Source: Thalia democratica (taxonomy: Eukaryota). Taken from it: a stretch of 64,000 nucleotides of DNA. How positions within the stretch are numbered: position 1 is the stretch's first letter; every line of letters begins with the position of its first letter. Under the pieces are notes generated by a model. That model was not told where the DNA came from. It saw only the letters and a program-made list of their open reading frames with translations, and searched no databases. A program made the translations under genes and the position numbers. The DNA lies in the NCBI GenBank assembly GCA_965202585.1, contig OZ241829.1:29698001-29762000 (forward strand), given 5' to 3'. This document shows positions 28,432-44,498 of this stretch, piece after piece.

Positions 28432-28582
28432 CTGGTGTGTTTGTGTTAAGCAAGTGAAATCCTTGAACATAACAGCTTTATAGCATGAGCAGAACAATTT
28501 TAAATGTTACATCTTAAAATAGATAGTGCAAAAATCAATCAAAAGTATGTTTTTAAAAATATAAAAGTAAAGAAGTACCGAC

Positions 28583-28771
28583 ATGAGATGCATTTCGGGT
28601 AACTTTTTCCGGAATCCCAAGTAAAGTTTCCGTTTTCGTTGCACACGACATACTCGGATGAGTTTGGATGGATTCTAAACCCCTGATCACACTCCAGCAT
28701 GAATTTAGAGCCGTATATTGGTTCTGGTGGACCGACAAACAATCCATGTTCCAACTTTGGTGGTTCGCAGA
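28583..28771 (-). CDS. CCP exon 1, left gene
   Basis: CEPPKLEHGLF...MLECDQGFRI...VCNENGNFTWDSGKSYPKCIS; 189 nt, phase 1-1. Confidence 0.92.
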
Positions 28772-29786
28772 CTGATGATAAAACAATTTTCAGTAAGAAA
28801 AAAATAGTGCTTAATCGACTTTTTAAAGTGCTGTTTCTTATTAGATGCAAGTAAGAAAGTATGGTTTGTAAATAAAATGTTAAAGATATAGTTCAAAACC
28901 TTATTTTTCAAGAAAAAAAACGTATCTAATGTTTTACTTATTTTTAAATTGATGTAACGCTTAAGTTTATAAAATTCATCAGTTTTTATTTCTTACATGT
29001 GCGTGAGATTTATTTCTGTTCAAAAATTTTAAGTTATTTATTTTTAAGATTGCAGATAGGTCAGAATACTTTAGAGAAGTCCTCTGGTGAAAACAATGCG
29101 AGAAATGTTTTTATACAAACTGGATTTTATTCATAAGTTATTATCTGAATTATAAAGTATTTCTTTAAAGTTTCAAACATATTTAAAATGTTGAATATAT
29201 GTTTAAAGTTGCACAGATATAGTGGTAAAAAGTACTCTCTTGGAATTTTTTACCATCAAAAAACATTAAAAAAAAAACTATTTTTCATGAACAAAAATTG
29301 TCTTTTTAGTACTTAATTTCTGTACTTGTAAATACTTTCTAAGAAGTTATTTTTTTATTTAAGTTTTGAAGACCTACGATTTTTAATTGAAACTTTTATA
29401 AAGAGTTTTAGAAATAATTTGAGAATTATTATATAAAATATGTCTAGTATTACTTTTAATTCTTTTTTTAAGTAACTTTGCTGTTAATTTTAAGTTTTCC
29501 AGAAGCCATAAATTCTAACATTTTTAAAACATCACAGATCTAAATGAAAACAACCTTTTAAAAATAAGCATATTCAGTATGTTCTAACAAAATTAGAAGG
29601 AAATAAATACTTTTCTGATGTTAAGATTGAAAGTATTTTATAAAAAAAATAAAAACTACATATTTTCAAGGTTAAATTTTTTAATTAAACAAATTTTACA
29701 CAGCTATTCTTTTTACTGCAGTTTTGTCCTGTATACAAGTTATATTTAATTCATTGTGACAATAAACATCAAATATCTTAACTTAC

Positions 29787-29838
29787 GCATAATGAACTGC
29801 CAGACTATACTGACTACATTGCAAGACGTGCACTGCAT
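29787..29838 (-). CDS. Candidate start exon of the CCP gene (partial signal-peptide-like sequence)
   Basis: AAAAATG then MQCTSCNVVSIVWQFIM, ending in phase 1 at a gtaagt donor, with an upstream tttgcag acceptor at 29859-29860. How it joins exon 1 is unresolved. Confidence 0.4.
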
Positions 29839-30645
29839 TTTTACTAACTTTTCTTGTTCTGCAAATTATTTTTTTTAAAGTTTTGTTTAACCTTAAGAAT
29901 TTGAATAAAAATAACATATAATGAAAAAATTTAGAATTTTAGTTTTACTGAAAAATAAGTGAGTGAACAAATAGGTTTATTTTTCATAAGCAATCAAATA
30001 GTTTTTACTTCTTAAAGAAAACTATACATTTTTATATCGATTTAACTAAGATTTAAATGGCTTACAAGCAATATTTTTCAAAAAACTTTAAGTTTTATAT
30101 TGTTATTTTGTAATTTTAATAGCATGTGCTTTGTTAATCTTGTCAACTGATTGTCACACTAAATTTATCAGGTGTAACTAATTTTAGATAACTATTAAAC
30201 TCTTCTTACATGTAAACTTTGCATAAACATTTTTAAAGTTGTAAATAAGTCCTATTAATCAAATATTACTCACTATGGTATATCTTGAAAACTTTGGTAA
30301 AACAATCTTTGGATTAACTTATCTTTAAAACTGTCTCATATCATTATACGTAAAACCTTATGCTATTAAGGTAGACAAGTTGTTTATTAAAAAGTAAAGT
30401 TTGTTTTTGTTTAAAAAAGCTATAACTTACTTTTTTGCAGCTTAGAAATTTTTTGATTTCACTAACTTCACAACTGCTAACTATTAAATCTTGAAAATTT
30501 GTGTTGTTTACTAAAAGCTTACATCTAGATGCAGTTTTTCTAAAGTTACGTCACAAAACTAGGAGCACTACACTCGATCTTTTCAAGATATTTTAGTTTA
30601 AAACTAGCTACACAAAATATTATTATCTTAATTATAAAATTAACT

Positions 30646-30720
30646 CAGGGGTCAACAGCTTTTTTTTGTGTAATGTGCCAATTTTCCGAGAAAAGTTGCT
30701 CGTGGGCCAAAAGCAAAAAG
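30646..30720 (+). mobile_element. Degenerate hAT/Charlie-like terminal remnant
   Basis: CAGGGGTCAACAGCTTTTTTTTGTGTAATGTGCCA resembles Charlie-type ends. No partner end was found. Confidence 0.3.
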
Positions 30721-31747
30721 TCTTCTACAGGCTGCAACTATTTCAATAAATGTTGTAGTAATTAAAAAATAAATATTTTAAGCTAAAGATGTTATAAAAA
30801 CTAAAATGACAAAGGACCAAGTGCCCAACGAATTATGCAATTAATTTGTAGCCATTGTAACTTAATTTATTAATTCCTAATTTGTTTTAAAACTGTTATC
30901 AAGGGATTACTTTAGTTGGTTAAGTTCTCATTCTAGAGTGACTTATTTATAAAAAGGAAATATTTAATTATATGTCTATCAAAAAATTAAATTGCCTGTC
31001 TGAAATAATGAAATTAACTTCTTAGTGTTCTTGTGAAAAATAATAAAACTGTATGTATCCACCTGCTCTTCAATATAATTATCATTCAAATAGTTTAAAA
31101 ATGTAAATACATGTTAACAAGGAATTCAAATCCTTCTCTAATGCAGTGCTTTACTTTCGCTTTGTTTATCTATTAATAAAATAATAAAAACGCTTCAATT
31201 ATTATGATATGTAAACTAGACTAGTTTCTAAAATAATTAAAAATGATCGTTTAATTAAATGGTTTTGCTAAAGTTATATTTTGTATTTAACTATATATTA
31301 TTCATGTTAACAAAATATAGTTTCCACAGAACTTTTTATATAAGTTGAAATGATTCTTATTAAATAAAAACATATGTTTTATTTTGAAAACTAAAACTTT
31401 TAAAGTATTTAAATTTCTGCACGCTGGTTCTTTTTTTACAAGTAAAAAGTTTTCAACAAAGGTCAACACTTTTCAGTCTAACAAATTAAATCAACGTAAT
31501 CGTTTGGGTTCTAATCTTTTAAAAGATATTATAGGCTAAAACAAATTATAAAAATGTTATTAATTTTCTTCCTGAAAAGTAAAGTTTAAAAGAAAGTACT
31601 TCATAAAAGTTATTGAGTTAAACTGTTTCAAAACTTTACAGTTTGTTCTTAAAGTCTTGTTGTTAAAGCTTTGTACACAAGTAAAATAAAAATATCTGTG
31701 TTATTAAGTTTTATCACAGACGGTATATTACTAATATTAATTCATAC

Positions 31748-34032
31748 CAGTGGCGTCGCGTGGTATTTTTTTTAGGTGGTGCAGAATTTAAAAAAAAATC
31801 CCCTTTTTTAAAACTCTTTTTTTATCTAAAATAAAGAACTTTTTCTACAACAATTACATTAAATTGCTAATGTAACTTGGGAAATTTTGTTTAAAAATAA
31901 AACATTTATTAAAAAAAAAAAAATATTTAAGAAAATAATTTTTTACAGATTTTAAAAATTCAATATATTTTTTTAGATATAGCTGGTCAAAGTCAAAGGC
32001 AATAAAAGGTTCCTTATGGGAGGCACAAACTAAAACAGCGCTTAAAAAAAATGTTTTACCCCCCCCCCCCCCCCCCCTTTTATGCCCTTAAAATCTACTT
32101 TAGAATTATTTGACTGAAATTATTTTATAAAGTTTTAATTTAACTACAACTCATCTTTTATCAATATAAAAAAATCATATTAACTTTTGGGATATGGTAA
32201 CTCACAGTCAGAGGTACAAAGGAATCCTTATTAATATAATATAAACTCAAACAAGTAATAAATCAAATCACTAAAATCATGTCTTTTTTTTTTATAAGAT
32301 GGCCTCAAAATCTTTAGATGTTTCTTTTATAAAAAAAACAAATTGCTGAAATAGATATTTGAAACACTAAGAAAAAAAAAGTTATAACAAAAGTTTTTTT
32401 TTGTATATATAAAAATATATATTGATACTTAAAAATTTAAAATTTCTCTTCAACAAAAGTAAACAAATTTTATAAAACTTAGGATGAAAAAGTTTGATAA
32501 AAACTGCTTTAAGAATGATGGAGAATATAGGTTTTCAGTAAAATTATATTCTTTTGCTGTTTTGATTTGCTCCTTATATAATAAATCATTGTACTCTCTG
32601 GCTTTGACCGGTTGTAACTAAAAGTTTAATTGGAAATTTCAAGTTTATTAAAGAGTAACTTTTAGCTTTTTGAAAAAGTTAAAATAAGAACAACATGTAA
32701 AAAAGTGCCTATAAACCTCCCCCCCCTTACCCCTCACTACTTTGCACTTATTTTTTTACAAACATTAAGACTTTTATTAACTTTTTTTCTAATTTTAATG
32801 TTTTTTTTTGGAGGTTTAAAATTCAATAGTTTAAAAGGGTATCTTTTCTTTATTTAATTTTAATATGTTTTTCATTTTGATGACAGTATTTTTCTCAGGA
32901 GCTCAATTTTTTTAAGTTTAGTTGGTGAGGCTGTTGAACTTTTAAAGAATTTTAAAGATAATTTATAAATTAGTAACCCTTATAGCAGTAAAAAATTGCT
33001 TAGTTAGTTTTCATGTGGCCATAGGGGTAAAACACTTATTTTTTAATTTTAGATAAGCTTGTTATTTTCAGAGTAAAAAACTAAAACTGCTTTAGTCAGC
33101 CTGAATATTTTTATAATTTGGTCTGTTTTAATTTATCTTGGGTCATCTTGAGTTTTTAACATTTCTAAGTTATCCTGATTATGAGGCAAGGCAACCATGT
33201 TTCAACAATTTTATCTAAAACTTTTGCTTTGTTTATGAAAAAATTAAACCAAAAGTCATATAAAGTAGACTAAATTTTCCTAAAATGTTAAACTACTCTA
33301 AGTAATCAAAGTTTCTAAGTTAAGGCTATTTACTTTATTTAAATATGTGACTGTTTCAATAATACTAGTTTTCATTTAATATAAGTCTAAATTATTTTTC
33401 TAGTGAACTAGAAGTTCTTTTTTTTTTTCAGAACTTAAACTTTACATTTAAATATAATTTAATTAAATATTTTATTAATTTTATGATAACAATAACAATT
33501 ATAATTAAGTTTATGTATGCAGATTAAAATAAAAAATCAAATTTCTTAGACTTTAGTGATTTAAGGTTCTTATCTTTTTTTTTTCAAAATATTTAATTCA
33601 TGACAAGTTTTGTTCTTTTATTGTCCAGTTTTAATAGAAGTGATCTGTTAAATTTAAAAAAACCATGTGGGTATATAAACTAAGTTTAATCCTTTGCAGT
33701 AGCTTAGCTTTGTTTTTATTTTATGTTTACAATAGCTTGTAGATGACACTTAAGCATGTCCTGTTTTAGGGAATTTTCAACTTAGTTTACTTACCGCAAG
33801 ATATTGATTTTGCGGTAATTCTTGAAGAAATTTTGCTTTTTTGAGTTCATTTGCGGCAGTCAGCTAAGAGTTTGCGGCAGTGAAGTGGGCAAAATGGTCG
33901 TTTTCAAAATTGGAGTTTTAAAAGAGATTTCGTTCTAAAACATAACGAAAACGCTACAGATACTTTTTTTTTTCTTACAAAATTTCAAGGTAGTGCAGTT
34001 GCGGCAGTGCAACACCCCACGCGACGCCCCTG
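31748..34032. mobile_element. Non-autonomous hAT DNA transposon, 2285 bp
   Basis: TIRs CAGTGGCGTCGCGTGG and CCACGCGACGCCCCTG; perfect 8-bp TSD ATTCATAC at 31740-31747 and 34033-34040; no transposase ORF. Confidence 0.92.
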
Positions 34033-34400
34033 ATTCATACTATTTACTTTTTAAACTTTGTAGAAAAAATTTGATTCTCAAACTAAAAACTAAAAGTGGT
34101 TTAAATTATATTTTGTGTAACAAATCTGAGTGTTTATATATTGCTTGCAACTTGAGTTTGATTGTGATTCTAATTTCTATCAAAAATAAATCGAAGGTTA
34201 AAAAAAAACAAGAAAAAATTAAGTTTTAAAAATAAATTTTAATAAAATTTTGTATTTATTTAAGTTTAATAATAGTTCTTTCAAATAAATTAATATTATT
34301 TAGTAAAATTAATACGGAAAAAGCGGTTAATTAGTATTTGAAAAAGTACACTTTGATACATTTCATGATTCTTTTTGTCAATAAAATTCGGTAAAAAAAC

Positions 34401-34474
34401 TTAAGGAAGGCTGAAAGCTTTTTTTATGAAAGGATTGTCTCTGTGTCTTCGCACAAAATCCGGACGTTTTCTTT
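34401..34474 (-). CDS. Possible alternative terminal exon of the lyase-like gene (basic tail)
   Basis: A strong tttttcacag acceptor; phase 1 gives ERKRPDFVRRHRDNPFIKKAFSLP* if spliced from a phase-1 donor at 34556 or 34538. Confidence 0.35.
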
Positions 34475-34512
34475 CTGTGAAAAAATAAAAAAATCGTTAT
34501 TAACTCACGTCT

Positions 34513-34700
34513 TTAAACGAGCACAAATTCAATCTGACCGTTGTATTCCAAATCACCAGTGAACTGCACGTCGTTTTGGTACTGGTGGTTGAAGTACTCG
34601 AACCTTTCGAGCGTGAACTCGTCGGCCGCCACAGTTTCCTTCTTGTATTCTTTGAACGACAGCTCGAACTTTGCCTTCACTCCGCTCGGGTTGTAAACTC
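34513..34700 (-). CDS. PL13-like domain, last exon (G-V-Y with the putative catalytic Tyr)
   Basis: GVYNPSGVKAKFELSFKEYKKETVAADEFTLERFEYFNHQYQNDVQFTGDLEYNGQIEFVLV*; completes the KF|GVY motif across the intron; internal phase-1 donors also exist. Confidence 0.8.
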
Positions 34701-35382: not shown

Positions 35383-35545
35383 CGAACTTAATGTAAGGAA
35401 CTCTCCCTTGCGCGTTTGCCCCGATAATAACCGGCAACTGATAATCGAGGTAAGAAGATTGCAGCTTGCCGTTAACTTTCAACTTCATTAAACCGTTCCA
35501 CGTTCGGATACCGGGGTCTCCAGTGCGACCGAGACGTTCCATTTC
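35383..35545 (-). CDS. PL13-like domain exon
   Basis: EMERLGRTGDPGIRTWNGLMKLKVNGKLQSSYLDYQLPVIIGANAQGRVPYIKF(G); phase 0-1; cf. heparinase I ILIGRNDEDGYYFKFG as recalled. Confidence 0.85.
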
Positions 35546-41892: not shown

Positions 41893-44498
41893 CAGTGGCG
41901 TAGCGTGGTATTTTGGTCAGGGGGTGCGCAAGTTTTTTCTCAAAAAATCCTCTAATTTAAAACTTCTGGGCCGCAAATTTTTCGAAGTCAATTTTCTCGG
42001 AAATTTAAAAAAATACTAAAAATCTATCTCCTACTTCATTTTTCAAGCAACCTTCTTCAAATTAAAAAAATAATTTCTTACGTTACAAGAAAAAAACGTT
42101 ACTTATGAATTAAGATAATTAAAAAAAAAAGTCTTTTTTTTTCAGAAAAAATATATTTTACTACAAATTTTTTAATTCACAAGTAATGTTTTTTTTATTG
42201 TATAAAGATTAAACTGTTAAAGTTTGAAGAAGATTTCTAGAAAAATGTAGGAGGAGATAGATTTTAAACAAACTAGCCTTTTTCGCTGTTTTAGTTTTCC
42301 CTTCCAATAGGTAACCTATTATGCGGCCCGACTTTGACTGGTCATATCTCAAAAAATAATTAGAACTTTTGAAAAGAATAAAAAGAATCTTAAAGCTTAA
42401 AAAAATCTTTCAAATAAGATCAACTTCTAAAAAACATGGCTTACCCCCCTCCCCTATGGCCTCAAACTACAAATAAATAATCAACTAGTATAACAATTAA
42501 CACCTCAAAACATTTTTCTCTGTGCAATTTCTAAATAATGTTCAATACCCATTTTATATCAACAAAAAAGAATTGTATTAAACTCAAAATAACTCATACT
42601 TTTAGTTTGTTGCAGCTTTTAATATACTATCTTTATCTTTTATATAAAAATGTTAAATCTTCAGTACTAAAATTGTAAATTTTAAATCTATAATTTTTTT
42701 GTAGGAGAAATCTAAAGAGCTAGTTTTTTTTTTTCAACTTCTACATTTTTACCTATATTACAATATAAAACTGTAAAAATAAATCTTAATAAATGAAGAA
42801 AATCTGAAATATAAACATAAAACCTTCATACCACTTGAACTGCAGTCTTGAGTAATAGCAATATCTGGTATTGGTCTGCTATTTTTCAATTCAAGCTTTT
42901 GAAATTCAGATAATTTTCCTACCTGACATATTTTTAGACTTGCAAAATTTCATACAATATTACTTTGCACATTTTAGAAAATAATAATCTAAAAAATAAT
43001 GAAAACAAATGTTTACTTTTTCTTTAATATTATAAAACATATTTTACAAAAAAAAAAAACAAAAAAAAAACTTTAAAGATATCAGGGTTGCCTTGCCACT
43101 CTTTGAGTCAAAATAACTGTCCTGACCCTGAGCTAGTTTAAAAATGTCATAAGTCATCATAAGCATTTTAAATTCTATTACAGAATTTTTTTATTGTTTT
43201 CAAACTAATAGAAACTAAGCTTTATAACAAAGCTTTTAAAACCAATAAATCTACCCTGAGTAAAAAAAATAATAATTCTATCCTTAGTCAGCCTGAGCTT
43301 AAAAATACTTAAAAAATTCTGAGTTATCATGATTTTTACTGAGTCATACTAAAGTTTTCCAAAACTTCATAAAATCCTGAGTTATCCTGAGTGTGTGGAA
43401 GGATTTTACTAAATGTTTCTGATACAAAACAAAATGTTTGAAAGATAATTTTTTTAAGGTCAACTTTTTCAATGCTTTTAAAATTCACAAGAAGTATAAT
43501 TTTTCACTTATCTTTAAGTCAGTTTTTCTAAGATCTCTAGAGAAAAGCATTTTTAAATACTACAAACAGTTGGTAGAAAGAAATTTTTTTTAAATATCAT
43601 TTAAAATTTGATTTAAAACAAATAAATTTTAATTTAAAACTAATCAACTATGTCTTTTAGAGTAAAAATTGATTGTAAAAATTTTGTTTTACAGTTGCTA
43701 TAAATTCATTCATGATGTGACTAAAGAAATTTTAAAATTACTTGCTACAAAAATTGATTAATCTTTAAACTTTATGGCTGATAAAATAACAAAGTTTGAT
43801 TTGTTTGTTATCTTAATAAAAAAAAATACTTTAAAAAAAAATTTTAAGTTTAGGTAATTTAAACAATACTTTTTGTATAGTGAGATTAAAACTGTAATCA
43901 CAGTATGAACTGTTTGTTTATCATTTTTTTTATTTTATTTTTTTATTGGTTTCTGTTTTTTTTATTTTTCTTTTAAATTATGTTGTTAATATTTTTTATT
44001 CTTATTATAAATTAGTTTTTATTTATTAGCAGTTGTTTATTGCTATTTTTACTACAGTTTGTTTATTCTTGAATCATTATCACTATAAAACAGGTTTAGC
44101 TTTATGGTTTGTTAACAAAATGTTTGCATTTGTCCTTATAAAAAACCAGTCATAAGGTTATACTACTGCGGTGCACTAACTAGTTGCGTACTGTTTGAGT
44201 CTAAATTCTTATGAAGTTAATGAAGTTAAAAAAATTTTCCTTATGGAGTTTTTCATCAACATCGGTGCGCATTTGCAATTACGCACCGAATCAGTATACT
44301 GGGTAATTTCCCTAACTTGTCACTTATTGGTATTCGAAGTTTCGTTTTACTTTTCGAATAGTAGAAAAACATAGTTGAAAAAAGGCAAATTAAGCAAAAA
44401 AAAAACAATAAAGGATAAAGATACTGCATTTTTTTTTTACTTATTTTTTTTTGGGGTGGCACGCATGCGCCAGCGTCCCTCCCAACGCTACGCCCCTG
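41893..44498. mobile_element. Non-autonomous hAT DNA transposon, 2606 bp
   Basis: TIRs CAGTGGCGTAGCGT and ACGCTACGCCCCTG; perfect 8-bp TSD CTTAGTAG at 41885-41892 and 44499-44506; no transposase ORF. Confidence 0.92.

Follow-up and report, generated by a model that had tools for sequence, protein, structure and literature searches.

The most likely reading, as judged by comparison among gene copies, is that the lyase gene and its neighbour, which encodes a long chain of CCP repeats, are separate genes of an ordinary kind, both on the minus strand of the window. The window is a stretch of 64,000 nucleotides from Thalia democratica (contig OZ241829.1, positions 29,698,001 to 29,762,000), and all features described here lie on its minus strand. 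W denotes the window copy of the locus, C3 a sister copy, and P1, P2, P2b, P3, P4, P5 and P7 are lyase paralogues. A previous sequence-only reading had proposed three endings for the lyase, namely a stop reached by reading through, a small exon encoding a basic tail, and a fusion to the CCP chain, and had leaned to separate genes. Every sequence feature that it listed is present at the window locus, and its leaning agrees with the most likely arrangement. The stop-carrying terminal exon of the lyase and the separate ATG exon of the CCP gene are both conserved. The conservation pattern and the homology of these two small exons are seen directly in the gene copies.

The full spliced model of the lyase is an open frame of 425 residues. 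A profile built from 14 bacterial heparin lyase I sequences scored it at 29.6 bits (E 1.5e-8 for a database of 1000), and the best of 999 shuffles scored 6.7 bits against the same profile; the reference sequence L063 matches the heparin lyase I structures in the PDB at 714 bits. The alignment pairs QWH of the window protein with qwhG of the profile and KFGVY with kfGiY, motifs that fall where the catalytic His and Tyr of heparin lyase I lie. Significance against the bacterial enzymes was reached by the spliced model only. Single lyase exons matched nothing in Pfam, solved structures or the ESM Atlas, a six-sequence lyase exon profile found nothing for the lyase among solved structures, and pairwise tblastn of the bacterial enzymes against the gene region gave one weak exon match only. 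Pfam PF14099 was matched neither in an exon-by-exon six-frame search of the genome nor by single lyase exons.

The exon that precedes the last large one (35383..35545) is conserved in the paralogues and ends ...YIKFG at a phase-1 donor, gttggt; in the spliced model, joining YIKFG to VYNPSG restores the heparin lyase I motif FKFGIY. The last large exon (34557..34700) is an open frame that contains the end of the lyase domain (VYNPSG...FKEYKKE) and a 24-residue extension ending ...VQFT, and it is within this exon that the alignment with the bacterial heparin lyase I profile stops. A signal-peptide exon for the lyase was also sought in the duplicated unit (41250-40584), where none suits the phase-1 acceptor of the EGF exon.

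If the last large exon is read through, its frame runs on to a TAA at 34515-34513. GT sites in phase 1 are present at 34556 (gtgatt) and 34538 (gtcaga), and a third GT site, gtgagt, lies at 34508, just past that TAA. Every one of the nine lyase loci examined in this genome retains a phase-1 donor where the window has 34556: W, C1, C3, P1, P2, P2b, P3, P4, P5 and P7 read ...T(G/S/A) directly before gt, and the P2b donor has the consensus form gtaagt. Past the donor the sequence is AT-rich, the frame closes after 0 to 23 codons at places that vary among the loci, and the loci are unalignable up to the small terminal exon that carries the stop. In the window the acceptor AG ends at 34475 and the terminal exon of 74 bases (34401..34474), preceded by a pyrimidine tract and AG, begins at 34474; it reads E-RKRPDFVRRHRDNPFIKKAFSLP up to the stop TAA at 34403-34401 (encoded by 34474-34401: ERKRPDFVRRHRDNPFIKKAFSLP, then stop).

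A counterpart of this exon is found in the paralogues. P1 and P3/P4 have in common a block of 77 bases, 270-365 bases downstream, with 79% identity (59% at the protein level), an AG before it, a reading frame in phase with the donor and a stop at its end; their other downstream sequence is unalignable. P2b has a homologous terminal exon too. Tail position 7 is Phe in W, P1, P3, P2b and P5 and Leu in P7, and position 10 is Lys or Arg in W, P1, P3 and P2b. P5 and P7 have only weak tail candidates, and none was seen in P2. A 159-base similarity between P1 and P2, considered as a further conserved exon past the P1 tail exon, proved to be AT-rich and non-coding.

We infer that the lyase would be spliced from the conserved phase-1 donor at 34556 over an 82-base intron (34475..34556, gtgatt...cacag) to exon 34474-34401, which would add a net-basic tail of 24 residues and a stop codon. 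The proposed intron holds the GT sites at 34538 and 34508 and the in-frame TAA 34515-34513, which would be intronic and read only on intron retention. Introns of 86-150 bases occur nearby, and donors of the GTT and GTG type are normal at the window locus. The 3' flank of the lyase (34200..34400), probably 3' untranslated region, carries ATTAAA and AATAAA about 130-140 bases past the stop, signals that are common by chance in AT-rich DNA. With donor and terminal exon both present in paralogues, the second of the endings proposed earlier is supported as a conserved gene structure of the family, and it is probably the main form.

The divergence between W and C3 follows the same boundaries. The large exon 34557..34700 differs at 1 of 144 bases, synonymously, and the tail exon differs at 1 of 74, which is exon-like, with conservation collapsing directly past the stop. 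The 82 bases from donor to acceptor differ at 4 positions, which is intron-like, and the 3' flank of the lyase differs at 21 of 197 (10.7%), with indels in addition. The comparison of exons with the 82 bases gives a Fisher p of 0.05, based on very few substitutions, and that of all proposed exons (3/459) with all proposed non-coding sequence (171/2791) gives p 1.6e-8.

This pattern bears on the alternative in which the lyase retains the 82 bases and ends ...VQFTGDLEYNGQIEFVLV at TAA 34515-34513, leaving the "tail exon" untranslated. In W, C1 and C3 the frame does stay open over a further 13 codons, and all three keep the stop. However, the corresponding 42 bases show three differences from C3, including one amino-acid change, which is a neutral rate and compares with 1/74 for the tail exon. 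The stretch is more GC-rich than local introns, as is the proposed intron over its first 50 bases, but DLEYNGQIEFVLV is without counterpart in any paralogue, the frames close at scattered points past the donor, and the paralogues possess a downstream terminal exon. As a homologue of the paralogue tail exons, DLEYNGQIEFVLV was rejected, with only 2 of 12 residues matching. The donor gtgatt at 34556 has no strong consensus match, and a consensus gtgagt lies directly past the in-frame stop, which we counted against splicing to the tail exon. On balance, we consider the read-through form unlikely, and the stop at 34513, one of the endings put forward earlier, sits in intron-like sequence.

The donor at 34538 (gtcaga), suggested earlier as a second route to the basic tail, fares no better. 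A splice from it to 34474 would add GDLEYN before the tail; it is in frame, it starts with GT, and GTC donors are present elsewhere at the locus, for example at 28582 and 40457. However, the intron of 64 bases would be shorter than any inferred here (minimum 86), no paralogue has a donor at this offset, and between W and C3 the added codons change at a neutral rate. We regard this shorter intron as extremely unlikely.

The tail encoded after the splice from 34556 has 8 Lys/Arg and 3 Asp/Glu among its 24 residues, and its VRRHRD fits the XBBXBX pattern in both W and C3. The tail had been likened earlier to heparin-binding motifs, but the basic charge is not conserved: the paralogue tails range from net +4 to net -2, and that of P3 has 5 basic and 7 acidic residues. 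Because of this lack of conservation, the tail can be called no more than putatively heparin-binding. The conserved feature of the tail is the aromatic or hydrophobic residue at position 7, and instead of binding sugar chains the tail may therefore pack against the protein.

The CCP-chain gene would start about 4.5 kb beyond the lyase with its own first coding exon of 52 bases (29838-29787), which would encode a short hydrophobic N-terminus and be joined in phase 1 to 28771. This exon (29787..29838) reads MQCTSCNVVSIVWQFIM plus one base and ends at a phase-1 donor, gtaagt. An old paralogous CCP gene has an exon of the same length and phase, MTCAACSIIGFVWEILL, with donor gttagt, 330 bases before its first CCP exon. 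The residue pattern M.C..C.[VI][VI].[IF]VW.[FI][IL][ML] is common to both start exons despite many nucleotide changes, and no similarity was found upstream of the ATG at the paralogous locus. Between W and C3, none of the 52 bases differs, mismatches start just upstream of the ATG, and C3 has a 4-base deletion within 29839..29858. The latter segment is a probable 5' untranslated leader of the CCP gene that starts at an acceptor-like AG, a possible spliced-leader site, and trans-splicing might take place at 29858.

The hydrophobic core of the CCP N-terminus (VVSIVWQFIML in W, IIGFVWEILLI in cluster 2) lies in each case directly before the first Cys of CCP1. No Lys or Arg precedes the core, and the Cys follows I-M-L or L-L-I, with no small residue among them. 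The N-terminus is probably a secretion signal, though not a textbook signal peptide. The ATG exon at 29787-29838, which had been offered as a candidate, is supported by the old paralogue; the remark that it lacks a clean signal peptide agrees with these residues, and the doubt over the exon itself was not upheld. The first CCP (Sushi) exon (28583..28771) is in phase 1 at both ends, begins (L)CEPPKLEHG and differs from C3 at 1 of 189 bases. The first three CCP exons match Pfam PF00084 (Sushi) with E values of 3.6e-7, 1.7e-6 and 8.9e-7 and 28.8-30.9 bits, above the curated cut-off of 20.7, and the orthologous first CCP exon in cluster 2 was found by tblastn with E 1.5e-13. At least 46 Sushi-type open frames are present on the minus strand of the window, which fits the earlier figure of about 48 CCP modules per chain.

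The CCP exon at 28771 is 5785 bases from the donor at 34556, in line with the 5.8 kb or so estimated before, and the spacer between lyase and CCP gene is unconserved. It holds a non-autonomous hAT-like transposon insertion of 2285 bp (31748..34032), the element of 2.3 kb recognized in the sequence-only reading, which is confirmed by an 8-bp target duplication, inverted repeats and many copies. The duplication, GTATGAAT, lies at 34040-34033 and 31747-31740, and the terminal inverted repeats CAGGGGCGTCGCGTGG and CAGTGGCGTCGCGTGG match at 15 of 16 bases. C3 has the empty site. For the end of the element, the genome contains at least 1290 candidate copies, and the best 40 scored are 97-100% identical. 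By these sequence features the insertion is young and high-copy.

In a fusion, which might be either the principal form or a regulated isoform, the lyase exon would be spliced from the donor at 34556 (or 34538) to CCP exon 28771 or the 29858 acceptor, and the enzyme would stand in front of about 48 CCP modules. Donor and acceptor are both in phase 1, but this match is expected by chance because all CCP exons are phase 1-1. In three tandem units the two genes adjoin and share one orientation, and the same pairing is seen, 16.5 kb apart, in the old paralogous cluster 2; over about 15 kb downstream of six other lyase paralogues, however, no CCP exon is present. The CCP N-terminus is atypical as a signal peptide, yet the ATG exon of the CCP gene is kept in the old paralogue, and in C3 the 4-base indel, placed between the ATG and the acceptor at 29858, disrupts any frame through that exon. 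In addition, a stop-carrying terminal exon is conserved in the lyase family, and the unconserved spacer tolerated a 2.3-kb transposon. The comparison of gene copies revealed no conserved open coding path linking the two genes. Apart from phase compatibility and adjacency, we see nothing that supports the fusion proposed earlier, and we consider it very unlikely.

The lyase and the CCP gene have remained adjacent and co-oriented in two anciently separated clusters, so that a functional link between them is conceivable. Some transcripts, a minority, might bypass the tail exon and be spliced from 34556 to 28771; the sugar-chain-cutting enzyme would then sit on a stalk of about 48 CCP modules with a discoidin-type domain at its tip. 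Alternatively, the two genes might be co-transcribed and then resolved by trans-splicing at 29858. We judge such coupling very unlikely.

A search of sequencing runs with 6963 bases returned only three, probably DNA, and a query that long can hide small RNA. The 62-residue last lyase exon, searched against 1.84 billion representative proteins, returned one unrelated repetitive protein of 545 residues and no transcript-derived relative. A paper on gene transfer in tunicates (PMC13390645) mentions neither lyase nor heparin.

With two separate genes as the most likely arrangement, the gene models at the locus are fixed, and the lyase would not form the front part of a giant CCP protein. Nothing about the junction is out of the ordinary; what is unusual is an animal family of PL13-like genes. 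The predicted animal heparin-lyase-like enzyme has at least 425 residues and comprises an EGF module, the lyase domain, the extension and a short tail. The comparison of gene copies shows the tail exon and the extension as ancestral to the animal lyase family and absent from the bacterial enzymes, and expression constructs and activity tests should therefore include both.

The elements of this locus resemble several known systems. Non-autonomous transposons of the hAT superfamily likewise have an 8-bp duplication, short inverted repeats starting with CAG and near-identical copies; the window copy has no long open frame and contains no transposase frame. Read-through ("conjoined") transcripts are known, and in tunicate operons genes with very short gaps are joined by spliced-leader trans-splicing. 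As in such operons, the lyase and the CCP gene are two co-oriented neighbours, and an acceptor-like AG precedes the downstream ATG by 20 bases, but the spacer measures 2.3-16.5 kb among the copies, which is far longer. Extracellular superoxide dismutase and VEGF165 are secreted proteins that bind heparan sulphate through a short basic tail at the C-terminus. The lyase tail of the window, as predicted from its DNA, is likewise short, separately encoded, net-positive and C-terminal, whereas the paralogue tails are not consistently basic. Finally, bacterial heparin lyase I (polysaccharide lyase family 13; for example from Bacteroides thetaiotaomicron, PDB 3IKW/3IMN) is colinear in alignment with the spliced protein predicted for the window. 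Unlike the bacterial gene, that of the window is interrupted by spliceosomal introns and has an EGF module in front. The bacterial enzymes end 19-22 residues after FKFGIY, whereas the window protein runs on for about 48 residues past that point, these being the 24-residue extension and the 24-residue tail on its own exon.

The window is AT-rich animal DNA with many introns (approximately 24–35% G+C in 2-kb windows), and every gene discussed here lies on the minus strand. The lyase gene, at approximately 40.6–34.4 kb, is flanked on both sides by copies of a long CCP (Sushi)-exon gene; the upstream copy ends near 45.45 kb with a terminal F5/8-type-C (discoidin) domain, and the downstream copy begins at 28771. 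Together, lyase and CCP chain form a tandemly repeated unit. Copy C1 precedes the window copy (W) by 53.2 kb and is 99.7% identical to it over 9.2 kb; copy C3 follows W at a distance of 44.8 kb, with a non-coding identity of approximately 95%. The homology between W and C3 ends at approximately 41250, about 660 bases upstream of the EGF exon, and thus the duplicated unit starts there. No lyase signal-peptide exon of compatible phase was found within 41250–40584. A hydrophobic ATG exon candidate at 44351–44429 on the minus strand (MQYLYPLLFFFCLICLFSTMFFYYSK; phase-1 donor gtaaaa) could be the first exon of the lyase; it lies outside the part shared by W and C3, and such frames arise by chance in AT-rich DNA.

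The sequence-only reading had left three endings open for the last large lyase exon (34700–34557), and all of the features that it listed were present in the window sequence: phase-1 GT sites at 34556 and 34538, an in-frame TAA at 34515–34513, an acceptor AG ending at 34475 and a small tail exon at 34474–34401 that encodes ERKRPDFVRRHRDNPFIKKAFSLP followed by a stop. A consensus gtgagt at 34508, directly after the TAA, was absent from its list. The comparison of gene copies, on which our verdict rests, indicates that the junction consists of ordinary gene boundaries. Splicing from 34556 to the tail exon is probably the main form, favored by a family-wide donor and terminal exon, while the evidence goes against the other two endings, read-through to the TAA and fusion of the lyase to the CCP chain. 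GTT begins four of the eight lyase donors and 9 of the 23 inferred CCP donors (minus-strand exon ends, window 15500–53100), an unusual feature of this region, and the hexamer gttggt occurs twice in the lyase gene (37584 and 35382). Introns of 86–150 bases are present nearby, and the splice signals provide no argument against the tail-exon reading.

Six more distant loci in the same genome contain the large lyase exon (P1, P2, P3, P4, P5 and P7); a seventh, P6, is represented by a fragment alone, and P2b is a further copy adjoining P2. P1, P2 and P2b are arranged in tandem at C4:53732300-53771499, spaced approximately 13–19 kb from one another, and the intervening DNA lacks CCP exons. In all these loci the large exon ends at one place, with ...Q(H/F)T(G/S) ahead of a phase-1 GT, and the P2b donor at this place is the consensus gtaagt. 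Past the conserved donor, the paralogue sequences become AT-rich and can no longer be aligned, with stops closing the reading frames after 0, 0, 2, 10 or 23 codons, a pattern that appears intron-like rather than that of a conserved C-terminus. A single block of 77 bases is conserved between P1 and P3/P4 (79% identical, 270–365 bases downstream of the donor); it has an AG in front, a phase matching the donor and a stop at its end. The encoded tails are EKYKQQFNEKVFGK... in P1 and EKFKEEFNAKVFGEN... in P3/P4, the latter ending in R and a stop. P2b encodes MINQKDFFNKSYKKTQN and a stop, and weaker candidates, each closed by a stop, are found in P5 (KSHMRSFLKYAYNES) and P7 (AKYASQLIHYIRTGRKNEF). 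In P2, where the frame closes directly after the donor, no tail exon could be recognised. The tails of P1, P3/P4, P2b, P5 and P7 share with the window's ERKRPDFVRR a Phe or Leu at position 7, and most have Lys/Arg near position 10. These shared residues indicate that the small tail exon is an ancestral part of the lyase gene family, with 34474–34401 as its window counterpart.

Divergence between W and C3 follows the same exon limits. The large exon carries one difference in 144 bases, a synonymous one, and the tail exon one in 74, against four in the 82 bases that separate donor and acceptor; in the 3′ flank there are 21 differences in 197 bases, and seven bases past the stop codon an 11-base indel interrupts the alignment. 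The Fisher p value was 0.05 for the two lyase exons against the 82 bases, and 1.6e-8 when every proposed exon was set against the whole of the proposed non-coding sequence (3/459 versus 171/2791). Read-through to the TAA, which would represent intron retention, is unlikely: its 42 extra bases alone contain three W/C3 changes, including one that alters an amino acid, and the scattered closing points of the unalignable paralogue frames argue against it as well.

The first exon of the downstream CCP chain (28771–28583, minus strand) has a phase-1 acceptor, and Pfam Sushi scored above cut-off in the first three CCP exons. A 52-base ATG exon at 29838–29787 (minus strand), proposed earlier as a candidate without a clean signal peptide, shows no differences from C3 in its 52 bases. 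The 60 bases upstream contain mismatches and a 4-base deletion that falls downstream of the acceptor-like AG at 29858 but before the ATG; this stretch is therefore non-coding, and a lyase frame through the ATG exon would be broken in C3. An old paralogous cluster on the same chromosome (cluster 2, C5:26.31–26.36 Mb) contains P3 and, 16.5 kb downstream, a CCP chain colinear with that of the window. Its ATG exon is also exactly 52 bases, with a phase-1 donor, 330 bases before the first CCP exon. The start-exon peptides (MTCAACSIIGFVWEILL in cluster 2, MQCTSCNVVSIVWQFIM in the window) keep their residue pattern from the ATG on while the nucleotides differ widely, which is strong evidence that 29838–29787 represents the real start exon of the CCP gene. 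Its peptide is atypical, as the earlier reading had noted: it has neither a basic n-region nor small residues before the first Cys and is not a textbook signal peptide. The cluster 2 chain (C5:26311000-26361999) includes approximately 18 near-identical one-exon CCP cassettes of 598–600 bases each, and the isolated P6 fragment lies beyond its end on the opposite strand.

The spacer between lyase and CCP gene measures 2.3 kb in C3, 4.5 kb in W and 16.5 kb in cluster 2; it is unconserved and tolerates a transposon. The 2.3-kb hAT element recognized in the sequence-only reading (34032–31748) is flanked by an 8-bp target duplication (GTATGAAT), its inverted repeats match at 15/16 positions, and the corresponding site in C3 is empty. 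The genome contains at least 1290 candidate copies, of which the best 40 scored were 97–100% identical over 183 bases. These features mark the element as hAT-like, non-autonomous and young. The insertion is common to W and C1, and thus the W/C1 duplication is later than the insertion. Fusion of the lyase to the CCP chain is highly unlikely, although it may occur as a rare isoform. The sole points in its favor are that the phases are compatible, as expected because all CCP exons are phase 1-1, and that the two genes are adjacent and co-oriented in both clusters. Against it stand the conserved stop-bearing terminal exon of the lyase family, the conserved start exon of the CCP gene, the unconserved spacer and six lyase paralogues with no CCP exon within approximately 15 kb downstream.

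The tail in the window contains 8 Lys/Arg, 3 Asp/Glu and the XBBXBX motif VRRHRD, and it would be suited to binding sulphated sugar chains, tethering the lyase near its substrate. However, the basic charge is not constant, since the net charge of the paralogue tails ranges from basic to acidic. Conservation instead centers on position 7, which is aromatic or hydrophobic, and thus a structural role of the tail is equally possible.

Exon-by-exon searches for the lyase gave no match, and no true relative of its last exon was found among 1.84 billion representative proteins, so that set holds no transcript-derived protein. A search of sequencing runs with a 6963-base query, in which small RNA sets may be hidden, returned three runs holding 57–76% of its words; as the query is mostly non-coding, these are probably DNA runs. 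We collected bacterial genes with the motif YFKFGIY, one of whose proteins matched solved heparin lyase I structures with 714 bits, and combined 14 such proteins into a profile. The spliced lyase model of nine exons (40583–40458, 39813–39675, 38944–38808, 37860–37585, 36339–36224, 35934–35830, 35545–35383, 34700–34557 and 34474–34401) is open throughout, encodes 425 residues and matched this profile with 29.6 bits (E 1.5e-8; best of 999 shuffles, 6.7 bits), its QWH and KFGVY pairing with conserved motifs. The bacterial heparin lyase I enzymes end 19–22 residues after FKFGIY, whereas the window lyase continues for approximately 48 residues more, of which the large exon supplies a 24-residue extension and the terminal exon the 24-residue tail, and thus the splice at 34556 leaves the lyase fold uncut.
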